A stretch of DNA of 64,000 bases, taken from Pocillopora damicornis (Eukaryota). A model generated the notes under the pieces. That model made no database searches, was not told the origin of the DNA, and was given only the letters and a program-made list of their open reading frames with translations. Numbering within the stretch: the stretch's first letter is position 1; every line of letters begins with the position of its first letter. The stretch covers positions 62,001-126,000 of the forward strand of contig NW_020846904.1 in NCBI RefSeq assembly GCF_003704095.1, in the 5' to 3' direction. The position numbers and the translations under genes were made by a program. Positions 637 to 36,957 of this stretch are shown here, piece after piece.

Positions 637-3600
637 CTCGAGACTAAATTTCGTGAGCCATCTCTCCTTGTGTATTCTGGTAAAGGGACATTGTTCATCA
701 GATCTTCAAACCTTTTAAATAACGAGAACAACAACAAGAAAAAAAAACCATCAATTTTAACGCATAAACTAACTTATTCTACGGGAGAAATGTATTTCGG
801 GACAAAAATACGTCTAACCACAAACTGCCACTTCGAGCAACAAAAGAGGATTACCGGGTGGGCAGCTTTTCACTAAAGTCGTCTTTCGGTGGCCAGTCCT
901 GTAATCAAACGAGCATGGATGAGAAGTATGCTAGAATCAAGGTATTCATGCGCGCGGAGATGGAGTAAGAGCCCTCCTTACTGGACCTCTCACCTAATAG
1001 GATTTCTTCGCTAACCAACAGTGAATCCCACTACGACATGAACATTTGCATAACCCTTTACACCTTAAAATCAGTAAACATATTCTCCTTACTGTTCTTT
1101 ATACATTTCCCGAGGCGCTAACAAGGCGAATTTTCCAAGAGCCTCTCTAGTTAGTGATCATTTCGTTTATTCTCGTGACCTTATTGTGTGATCAAGGGGT
1201 GATGGTGTAAGGAGAAATTAGATGCGAGCCACTTTTAGGGGTCAAAGGGTTAACAACACGCTTGAAAAATACGCTGTCAAGCAGTAAGGCCAAAAGATAC
1301 AGTTTCAATGGGCATGACACGTGATGTGTCACGTAAAAGAGATTTCACAGAAAAGGAGAAAAAACATAAATAGCTAGGAGATAAGATACCTTGAGTTTTA
1401 ACAGCATTGGTTCGCCATTGCTATCCAAAGGACGATCTAGTTGGACAGAGTTTAAACGATGGTTAATTCCAAAAACAACAAATAAATTGCCAAAACGATA
1501 TTTACACAAAAACAAAAAAAAAACACAACAACAGTAATATAATAATAATAATGATAATAATAATACATCGCATGTATCACAAACAGAAGATATACTGTAG
1601 AGTATTTATACACCTTTTATGCTCTCAAATCCCTGCCAAAAATCACCAACTTTAAAGCGCTCGACCACCACTCCATTCCTGCAGTTCACTACATCAGAAA
1701 TTTCAGAACCTGTGAAGAAAAGACCGCTTATTGCACATAACTCCGCGAACCACACACAAGAACTTTAAGTGAACTCCTTTAGTCAATAGCTGTAAAAATG
1801 TCAGGCTACAGTTAAGCAGAGAGGGTTGCGTTGCAGTCTTGACCAACTCTAAATCTAGGCATTTAGTTCATTTATCTGGTGGTAATAGCACGCATCGGTC
1901 GGAAAACGTTCGAAGATTCAGTGCACTTTGAGGTTTTCACTGACAGAAACAAGGCTTACCATAGCTATACAATCCAATGTCAGATTTACAGACACGATCC
2001 CAATTCTGGAAGGTAGGCTGTGCCTCAAACAGGGTCGTTAAAATATTGTAGCCGACCTTTCCCTATGCTCTTTCGTTACCAAGGTGATGTGCTGTTCTTT
2101 AGTTAAGTATTCTCTACCTAACTCCGCTCTATTACTCATCAATGCCTCCCACCTCTCTGTATTCAGGCCAGAGGACTTAACATCTCTTTTACACACATCC
2201 TTATCGCGAAGCTATCTTACAAGGTTGTGCAAAATGTCTTGCGTGACAGATACTTCATTGTATCTAAGTGTCACGTAACTTACCAAACTCCTCGCCAAAT
2301 GCTTTTGGAGTCCAAATATCCAGGTTCAAGTATTTGTCCACTTGGCTGACCAGAACAGGCTAGTAACAAATAACAACGTCACGGTCATTCCAGGGTCAAA
2401 CGAGGTTTGGATTTTGCAACATCAGCGTAATTTACCACTAAGAAATTAGTAAATTGACTGAAATATTTATTACCTTCTTTTCGTTTCTAACTTGCAGACA
2501 GTACTCAGCGTTTCCATTGAAACGCTCATAATATCATGAACAAGCAAACAGCAAGAAGCTCATCAAGAAGCTCCAAAGCCATAGCTTACACACAAACACG
2601 TCAACGCGAAAACACACACGAAAACTAACCTTCCGCATGAACACGATCGAACACCCTACTCATTAATGATTTTTGAGGTTACTCAATAACGGGAGAACAA
2701 AGAGAACGCAATAAATATCCCAACTGTTACTGGCCAAACAAGAGTGTTTACCTCGCCCTTTTTCCACCGAGCCTCAAAAGCGTTCAAGTTTCCTGGATGT
2801 CTGGGATCGTGGAGTCTCAACAAACGGCCATCGCACAACCAAGAATGGGGTACAGCCTCGGGTGAGTCCAGGACTGGGGCGACCGCGTGGCTTCGTACCT
2901 CTTCAGAATATTCGGCACTTGTCGATTCACAAGTTGTGGCGACTGAGCCGGGAACTGACATAAGAACATGGTAAGAATCAAATATGAAAAAAAATACGAG
3001 AGGAAATAGACGTCTAGAGCGGGGGACTTGTCTAGTCTTTGCCCAACGACGTGCGTTCACCCGTAACATGTAACTCCCAGAAGAGATTAACATGGAAAGT
3101 CCCGTCACATTTTCAGTACATTGTCTATCAAACTGGTGAGGAGTATGTAGCAACCCTCATTACTTGGAGTTAGTCAAGGTTGTTGCTACGAAGCCAAATT
3201 CTATCTACTAATTTACACCGAAGTACATGGCACTTGTGGAGAGAATTACTAGTGAGAGCGAAACATTACACAGTGTTGAATGCATGTCTGCTCGGGCCCG
3301 TTTCTCAGAAAACCGGTAACTTAGGGGACTTGAAATCTTATTTTCGAGTCTACATCTATAGAACAGCAGCTTGAGTTTTAGTTGGTTGAATATCAAAACC
3401 ATCAATATCTCGATCTTTAAGGAAAGTACTCCAGACGAAAATCCGCTTTCTGGGACCAGTAACTACCGGGGCCTTCGGGGAACGGGCCCAAGGTGTGACA
3501 TTGTTTGGTTTCCTTAATTTTTTTCCTCATTTTTTCTACAATGGCGTTACTTTAGATTTCTTTACATCAAAATAATTACCATCTGTAGTCCTGTTGTCAT

Positions 3601-36300: not shown

Positions 36301-36957
36301 GCTCTTACTTAAAACCTTGTCATAACCTCGTTAATTAAATTTTCCTTAGAAGCAAGTTTCCCGCCACCAGTTCTCAGGCATTTTTGTTGGCAATGAGCTT
36401 TGAATTTTGCTAATAGTAGTTATGTCACAGCAAGTGCCATTGACCTAATGGGCAAGGAAAAAGTCCACTTATTAAGCAAACTCACACAACAGTTTAATGT
36501 TATGTGAAACTCTCTTGTTAAATTTTTTTAATTGTCATGTGCCATAGGTCTACCAGCATGATAATTGGTATCAGGTAGAGGGGCAAAAATTAAAAGAAAA
36601 AAGATTTTTAATCATGACTAACAGTGAATTCTATTAAGTGAAACACTGATCCATGGGATGGTGTACTTGTTGAAAGTAATACTAATTTCTCATTCCTCAA
36701 TTTTGATTTTTTTTTCCAAATTAACTGTGGAACTCAATTTTTCTGTGCTGGAATTTGAGCAATGAAACATAGATTACTTTGAAAACTGCTTTATTTAAAA
36801 TATATTTCCCATTTCTTACTCCTCATGTTGTGCAATTGAACTATATATGTCTGTGTGTTCCTACCAAAGATAGCCTTGACAATACTAATTGGTAGCTCTA
36901 TTAACCCTTTTGTTTCAGACCAGAACACAAAGCAGGACTCAAAGGAAGATTGTCTAG
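30347..36957 (+). CDS. REEP: Receptor expression-enhancing protein, REEP1-4 subfamily (ER-shaping), ~290 aa, 11 exons
   Basis: Spliced translation [48 protein letters not shown]...[34 protein letters not shown] is the REEP1-4 TB2/DP1 domain. Exons: 30347-30378, 30458-30530, 32286-32365, 33626-33689, 33861-33917, 34476-34589, 34758-34972, 35272-35392, 35522-35572, 35783-35809, 36919-36957. The last three are less certain. Confidence 0.93.

Follow-up and report, generated by a model that had tools for sequence, protein, structure and literature searches.

A KDM3-SIL1-REEP gene neighbourhood in the coral Pocillopora damicornis that echoes the vertebrate KDM3-REEP pairs and may predate the coral-vertebrate split

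In a stretch of 64,000 nucleotides from the stony coral Pocillopora damicornis (the window hereafter; C3539:62001-126000, part of a 154,436-bp contig; the assembly has 234 Mb and 4,393 contigs), we found the genes for a KDM3/JMJD1-type histone demethylase (-), a SIL1-type protein (-) and a REEP1-4-type protein (+) to be consecutive. This trio echoes the KDM3-REEP pairs of vertebrates, which suggests that the neighbourhood is older than the split between corals and vertebrates. The vertebrate half of the comparison was known already and the deep half is plausible: we infer a retained ancestral linkage as the likeliest reading of the likeness between coral and vertebrates, and hold it to be reasonably probable. 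The stretch is normal P. damicornis genome, correctly assembled, and the elements at issue in it are the following.

1-20811, minus strand: KDM3/JMJD1-type histone demethylase, the part inside the window; coding start at 20811, gene continuing leftward
22539-22584, no strand: assembly gap (N), intergenic, between the KDM3 start at 20811 and the last SIL1 exon at 24261-24566
24258-27603, minus strand: SIL1-type gene (Fes1/armadillo nucleotide-exchange factor of Hsp70/BiP), with Fes1, Arm and HspBP1 matches
30347-37104, plus strand: REEP1-4-type gene (TB2/DP1/HVA22 domain), from tblastn of three isoform proteins and per-exon domain matches

Searching the spliced genes one exon at a time, we established the identities and the order KDM3(-)/SIL1(-)/REEP(+) that an initial annotation of the stretch had proposed, by domain, structure-chain and tblastn matches. 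No further long open reading frame (ORF) that codes for protein lies between KDM3, SIL1 and REEP. The initial annotation had also described KDM3 and REEP as divergent, and their start codons, 9.5 kb apart, do point away from each other, but the head-to-head partner of REEP is SIL1 and not KDM3.

The demethylase gene could be followed from its N-terminal domain to its catalytic exons, with exon coordinates that are those of stop-free frames rather than mapped splice sites. Its first coding exon (20587-20829) matched Pfam DUF7030, the KDM3-family N-terminal domain, at 2.1e-13. The exons at 2686-3156, 1609-1764 and 540-773 were collinear with residues 3-35, 61-91 and 122-150 of the KDM3B catalytic construct (chains 4c8d/5r7x), and the long low-complexity exons at 12377-13606, 9125-10999 and 3539-4423 were without a Pfam match. 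A Cys/His-rich zinc-finger exon lies in 4947-5234; its Pfam zinc-finger matches were weak (0.02-0.08), and we take it to be the KDM3-type finger. Because the gene passes the left edge of the window, its catalytic JmjC exons lie outside, and position 637, from which the block had originally been counted, marks the last exon inside the window rather than the end of the gene. The HLD and PHQV motifs, which hold the His-x-Asp and the second His of JmjC, were found in exons within 10 kb to the left of the window (L005), where the JmjC exon (L005:7114-7302) matched KDM3B at 1.4e-14, JMJD1C at 1.5e-7 and Pfam JmjC at 4.8e-5. The coding part of the gene stops at about C3539:57650. The Fe(II)-binding JmjC residues, the closest match being to KDM3, and the presence of both the N-terminal domain and the Cys-rich finger point to a member of the KDM3/JMJD1 family, as judged from sequence. 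The KDM3-type JmjC exon is single copy in the genome. A search with the 625-amino-acid exon returned 35 matches, all of them exon-sized ORFs of 402-818 amino acids without a Pfam domain and none joined to a recognisable KDM3 domain; judged by identity, most or all of them come from corals. An interspersed repeat of ~200 bp lies in a KDM3 intron at 1051-1253, with at least 40 other copies at ~79-82% identity on many contigs.

For the second gene, exons were placed in 24261-24566, 25294-25740, 26343-26654 and 27118-27603, a mapping that covers the exons downstream of the 5' exon; the latter would hold the start codon and the signal peptide and is expected between 27.6 and 29 kb. Matches to Fes1 (1.1e-8 on 26343-26654), to Arm (3e-4 on 25294-25740) and to HspBP1 chains (1.8e-7) indicate that the predicted protein has a Fes1-type N-terminal region and armadillo repeats. 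Exactly one other Fes1-type locus was found in the genome, on contig C3358, for which a PDB search gave no match, and the two loci fit the pattern of the usual pair of SIL1 and HspBP1. Of these two names we provisionally chose SIL1 for the gene in the window, on its presumed similarity to human SIL1. ESM Atlas matches of the SIL1 exon to bacterial DUF proteins (0.85) were at chance level and were rejected. A very high-copy repeat occupies 24662-25035 in a SIL1 intron, where the summed contig depth reached several hundred to >1,000x that of the flanks in all four sequencing runs, with many loose ends.

The REEP of the window corresponds to XP_027054550.1 ("receptor expression-enhancing protein 1-like isoform X2"), which carries the PF03134 annotation and which tblastn placed at 30347-36954, with the start ATG at 30347; its exons matched TB2_DP1_HVA22 at 2.7e-7, 2.6e-5 and 2.7e-3. 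Alternative last exons are present in 36913-37104, as isoform X2 ends at 36954 and isoforms X1 and X3 use 37012/37015-37104, and the P. meandrina model of the gene (398 amino acids) appears to read through introns. The locus is the only one of REEP1-4 type in the genome, which holds two further TB2/DP1 loci of REEP5/6 type with 30-35% identity to the REEP of the window. When we searched with the exon-2 frame (E <=0.001), the motif YPAY.S.KA was present in 137 of the 150 best among 578 library representatives. Among the best 120 relatives of the Nematostella ortholog, 82 had a numbered name, in every case 1-4, none was named 5 or 6, and 38 were without a number or a name. A maximum-likelihood tree of 25 rows, which held no named vertebrate REEP5/6 and left the deep bilaterian branching unresolved, placed the window REEP next to those of Porites and Acropora (98/93), in the anthozoan part of the cnidarian clade and within the REEP1-4-type set, and set the coral's REEP5-type ORF and a metagenomic HVA22-like protein apart by a long branch (99/97). 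A placement in the REEP5/6 clade, which had been named in advance as the outcome that would overturn the proposal, did not occur: names, motif and tree all give the REEP1-4 type, and a REEP5/6 identity was rejected on the tree (99/97), the names of the relatives and the low identity to the REEP5-type loci. The REEPs of coral and Nematostella also share a stretch of 11 residues after the membrane domain (window 34758-34970) that recalls the RLRSFS 14-3-3 "lynchpin" site, which Tinti 2012 describes for human REEP1-4 (PMC3411107).

The neighbourhood extends beyond the trio. A RhoBTB gene (C3539:22459-23949, minus strand) lies to the left, 34 kb from the 3' end of KDM3, with an exon of 497 amino acids that carries Ras, Roc and BTB domains. 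Since RHOBTB2 is listed together with HR, REEP4 and EGR3 in the human band 8p21.3 (PMC4346930), RhoBTB may be a fourth member of the conserved neighbourhood. To follow it in other cnidarians we used accession numbers, locus tags and contig sizes as proxies for proximity, and in P. damicornis itself the proxy held, RhoBTB (XP_027054545) and REEP (XP_027054549-51) being ~70 kb apart. In P. verrucosa the two genes have the accessions XP_058961819 and XP_058961838-40 on one chromosome record; in Oculina patagonica their locus tags are ten apart (G006253 and G006263), also on one chromosome record; and in two further coral assemblies (ENA), RhoBTB and the large KDM3 exon were found on contigs of equal size, 766,345 and 1,350,316 bp, respectively. 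By these proxies, the wider RhoBTB...REEP neighbourhood is conserved in other stony corals. Searches of environmental and genomic collections added no further block. In a metagenome scan with an 18-protein REEP1-4-type alignment, 77 of 80 loci were transcripts, lying on contigs of 1.0-4.0 kb and matched in full as if unspliced. Only three contigs were longer, one of 4.5 kb (L081) and two of ~7 kb (L092/L093), of which the latter two have Mo25, BMS1-type and ARM-repeat genes beside an HVA22-like gene and are without JmjC or SIL1. The same alignment run against the genome-contig collection gave 178 pattern matches, none of which was confirmed.

As the assembly gap falls exactly between KDM3 and SIL1, the trio could in principle be an artefact, with a scaffold join at the N gap wrongly uniting the KDM3 side with the SIL1-REEP side; the surrounding 21.5-22.9 kb are moreover rich in repeats and covered by short contigs alone. 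The gap is intergenic, so that no reading frame is interrupted by it. We aligned contigs of four sequencing runs, from four studies, over 19800-25400 and found the gap to be bridged in two of the four (X1 and X6), which come from two different studies. The bridging contig of X1 covers 149 letters on the left side and 2,256 on the right, and that of X6 covers 147 and 1,269; each has 68 letters of its own between the flanks, and together they establish continuity across the gap. Among the contigs listed, those of the other two runs (X7 and X15) reached the gap from one side only, and none in the four runs spanned both KDM3 exon 1 and SIL1, as only short pieces tile the repeat-rich segment. Furthermore, RhoBTB on the left of the gap and REEP on its right bear neighbouring accessions in P. 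verrucosa, whose assembly is chromosome-scale, and neighbouring locus tags in Oculina. Given the two independent bridges and this agreement between species, we consider a false join extremely unlikely.

On the vertebrate side, REEP1-4 are described as ohnologs of the two rounds of genome duplication (2R) that lie in paralogons, and a search of 500 kb around them gave HR/KDM3A/JMJD1C/KDM3B and EGR1-3 among the neighbouring families (Tinti 2012, PMC3411107). The vertebrate KDM3/REEP paralogon on which the initial annotation relied is accordingly real and already in print, so that the half of its claim put forward as established had been published. Its placing of SIL1 in 5q31 with KDM3B and REEP2 also proved right: Graubert 2009 gives the order FAM53C, JMJD1B, REEP2, EGR1, ETF1, HSPA9, ..., CTNNA1, LRRTM2, SIL1, MATR3 for human 5q31.2, with variant positions at 137.74 Mb (JMJD1B) and 138.41 Mb (SIL1), that is, JMJD1B-REEP2-...-SIL1 within ~0.7 Mb (PMC2642994). 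The three coral genes thus have their counterparts within ~0.7 Mb of a single human band, where the order differs. The vertebrate paralogon and the coral locus are alike in that the same two gene families are neighbours, the coral having single pro-orthologs together with the SIL1 of the 5q31.2 copy; they differ in that SIL1 stands between KDM3 and REEP in coral and that no EGR is present on the 154-kb coral contig. The topic of Tinti 2012 also differs from ours, as it deals with the 2R duplications, uses amphioxus genes as family anchors only and, in its available text, makes no claim of linkage beyond vertebrates (PMC3411107).

The coral trio also resembles the conserved microsyntenic pairs of Irimia 2012, in which unrelated genes stay close across phyla and for which a cis-regulatory explanation is proposed (PMC3514665); that class is defined by many genomes, whereas the coral case is documented in stony corals and vertebrates only. 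We found no published report, supplements aside, of KDM3-REEP linkage beyond vertebrates, and among the matches listed no paper that joined microsynteny with REEP3 or JMJD1C. A paper on the evolution of HR held no synteny data, and pig and mouse papers gave nothing usable on the distance between RHOBTB1 and REEP3.

Under a retained linkage, KDM3, SIL1 and REEP would have been tightly linked already in the last common ancestor of cnidarians and bilaterians and would have stayed close in slowly rearranging lineages (anthozoans and the vertebrate stem), with local reshuffling that may have put SIL1 between the pair in coral and, in human, at a distance of six protein-coding genes past REEP2; retention of this kind would need no function. 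Several points weigh against it. The comparison covers only two lineages, stony corals and vertebrates; sponges, placozoans, hydrozoans, protostomes, echinoderms and amphioxus are not among them. Gene order differs, being KDM3-SIL1-REEP in coral versus JMJD1B-REEP2-...-SIL1 in human, and the orientations of the four human KDM3-REEP pairs are presumably not uniform. A single chromosome record (18,096,078 bp) carries both RhoBTB and REEP of Nematostella, but their accessions are 4,042 apart, and in older models they are on different scaffolds of 554,859 and 842,941 bp, a separation from which it follows that the wider RhoBTB-REEP block has not been kept even within Hexacorallia. Since KDM3 and REEP belong to one ancestral linkage group, chance near-adjacency in two genomes is non-trivial: by a rough estimate, a given pair falls within one intervening gene in a linkage group of ~1,000 genes with a chance of ~0.4%. 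Over a whole genome this still leaves room for many chance pairs, so that agreement between two lineages is by itself weak evidence. In the main text of Irimia 2012, supplementary lists aside, none of the six names Reep, Jmjd1, Kdm3, Sil1, Rhobtb and Egr appears (PMC3514665).

The two documented lineages, the differing orders, the split of RhoBTB from REEP between stony corals and Nematostella, and the chance near-adjacencies that would be expected inside a conserved linkage group are also what could be left by an independent juxtaposition, in which KDM3 and REEP shared an ancestral chromosome and were brought close separately in the coral and in the vertebrate stem. Against this stand the three genes, four with RhoBTB, that lie within ~75 kb in coral and the closeness of the same genes or their ohnologs in human 5q31.2 and 8p21.3; three or four genes close in both lineages are less likely to arise by chance than a single pair. 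We therefore regard separate juxtaposition as possible but somewhat unlikely, and favour the retained linkage.

Whether regulation holds the genes together is a separate matter, on which the CpG content of the window bears, given here as the ratio of observed to expected CpG (CpG o/e).

20001-24000, no strand: CpG-rich island at the KDM3 5' end, downstream of SIL1; CpG o/e 0.9-1.1
28501-31000, no strand: CpG-rich DNA separating the SIL1 (-) and REEP (+) 5' ends; CpG o/e 0.76-1.3, versus 0.05-0.3 in the bodies of these two genes

We take the island at 20-24 kb to be the probable promoter region of KDM3, and the region at 28501-31000 to be a putative divergent promoter region shared by SIL1 and REEP. 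The initial annotation had offered shared cis-regulation as a possible reason for the adjacency of KDM3 and REEP. This idea is not supported, as SIL1 lies between the two, KDM3 has an island of its own and the island of REEP is shared with SIL1. A bidirectional KDM3/REEP promoter was likewise rejected on account of the separate CpG islands and the whole gene in between; with separate islands, KDM3 and REEP are without a common promoter in coral. The sole coral pair with an anatomy of shared regulation is SIL1/REEP, head to head over ~2-3 kb of CpG-rich DNA, and these two plausibly share a promoter in coral; as a pairing of two genes for proteins of the endoplasmic reticulum, it is the only functional lead. 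In the human order, SIL1 and REEP2 are not adjacent but six protein-coding genes apart (PMC2642994), and with SIL1 that far beyond REEP2 the coral pairing has not been kept there.

A regulatory constraint can nevertheless be imagined, in which selection holds KDM3, SIL1 and REEP together through regulatory DNA in or beside neighbouring genes (a bystander or shared-enhancer arrangement). All four vertebrate paralogons are reported to retain, after two rounds of genome duplication, a member of the KDM3 family close to a REEP (PMC3411107), and the coral SIL1 and REEP have the anatomy of a bidirectional promoter over one CpG-rich island. SIL1 and REEP both encode proteins of the endoplasmic reticulum, which would fit such a constraint. 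However, KDM3 has its own CpG-rich island and an entire gene separates it from REEP, and the only pair with the anatomy of a shared promoter is not kept in human, where SIL1 is not adjacent to REEP2. On balance, we judge such a constraint unlikely. A fuller version, that RhoBTB-KDM3-SIL1-REEP is a pre-bilaterian block more than 600 million years old and actively held, with SIL1/REEP and their one divergent promoter as its core, regulatory input in or beside KDM3, and the vertebrate pairs as its duplicated remains, is speculative and in our view quite improbable. The retained linkage that we prefer calls for none of these elements.

The remainder of the window holds four further genes. NCAPG, POMK, a complexin and a GPAM-type acyltransferase had all been named before, and Pfam and PDB matches bore them out.

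~40275-50065, minus strand: NCAPG-type condensin subunit (Cnd3 1e-6, and HEAT)
50229-52610, plus strand: POMK (PDB chain 5gz8, 2e-65)
53561-54007, minus strand: complexin (Synaphin 1.8e-17)
~57091 to past 62718, minus strand: GPAM-type acyltransferase (GPAT_C 2.1e-9)

NCAPG (-) and POMK (+) stand head to head, with their ATG codons at 50065 and 50229 ~164 bp apart in a CpG-rich island at 50-51 kb, which gives the window a second candidate for a bidirectional promoter at 50063-50231. CpG o/e was 0.03-0.3 in the bodies of the KDM3 5' half, SIL1, REEP and NCAPG; along the window, depleted segments (12000-20000, 24500-28000 and 31000-49000) alternate sharply with undepleted ones (20000-24000, 29000-31000 and 50000-51000, CpG o/e ~1.0), and the complexin region at 53-56 kb is not depleted at all. 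The pattern looks like gene-body methylation on broadly expressed genes and none on a neuronal gene. Left of KDM3, outside the window, the contig carries a papain-family protease and an ORF rich in proline as well as the RhoBTB gene. To the right of the window follow a large exon of 717 amino acids without a Pfam match (L012:474-2624) and, at the right end of the contig, two Laminin-G-type exons and a Kv-type potassium channel with BTB_2 and Ion_trans domains (L012:7319-9206 and L013:2174-3803).

The wider content of the contig is what macrosynteny would lead one to expect. Cnidarians and bilaterians are said to share macrosynteny in ancestral linkage groups, in work by Putnam from 2007 and Simakov from 2022. 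All identified genes of the contig presumably have human relatives, NCAPG, POMK, CPLX1/2 and GPAM/GPAT2 among them, on chromosomes 2, 4, 5, 8 and 10. That one coral contig of 154 kb would map to one vertebrate paralogon is not remarkable by itself. The trio differs from this expectation in scale, since macrosynteny predicts a shared chromosome and not adjacency, and the coral finding is at the scale of one to two genes.

As it stands, the finding is a two-lineage coincidence atop a published vertebrate paralogon, which deserves a systematic check and would not surprise a specialist in synteny. If the neighbourhood proved common to many phyla, a well-defined block of unrelated genes would be added to the catalogue of ancient microsynteny, and it would be one whose KDM3-REEP part each of the four vertebrate ohnolog copies retains. 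The block includes REEP1/2 (spastic paraplegia), SIL1 (Marinesco-Sjogren syndrome) and genes of the 5q31.2 myeloid deletion interval. Under that same condition of presence in many phyla, it would offer a tractable case for setting regulatory entanglement against slow rearrangement as the cause of retention.

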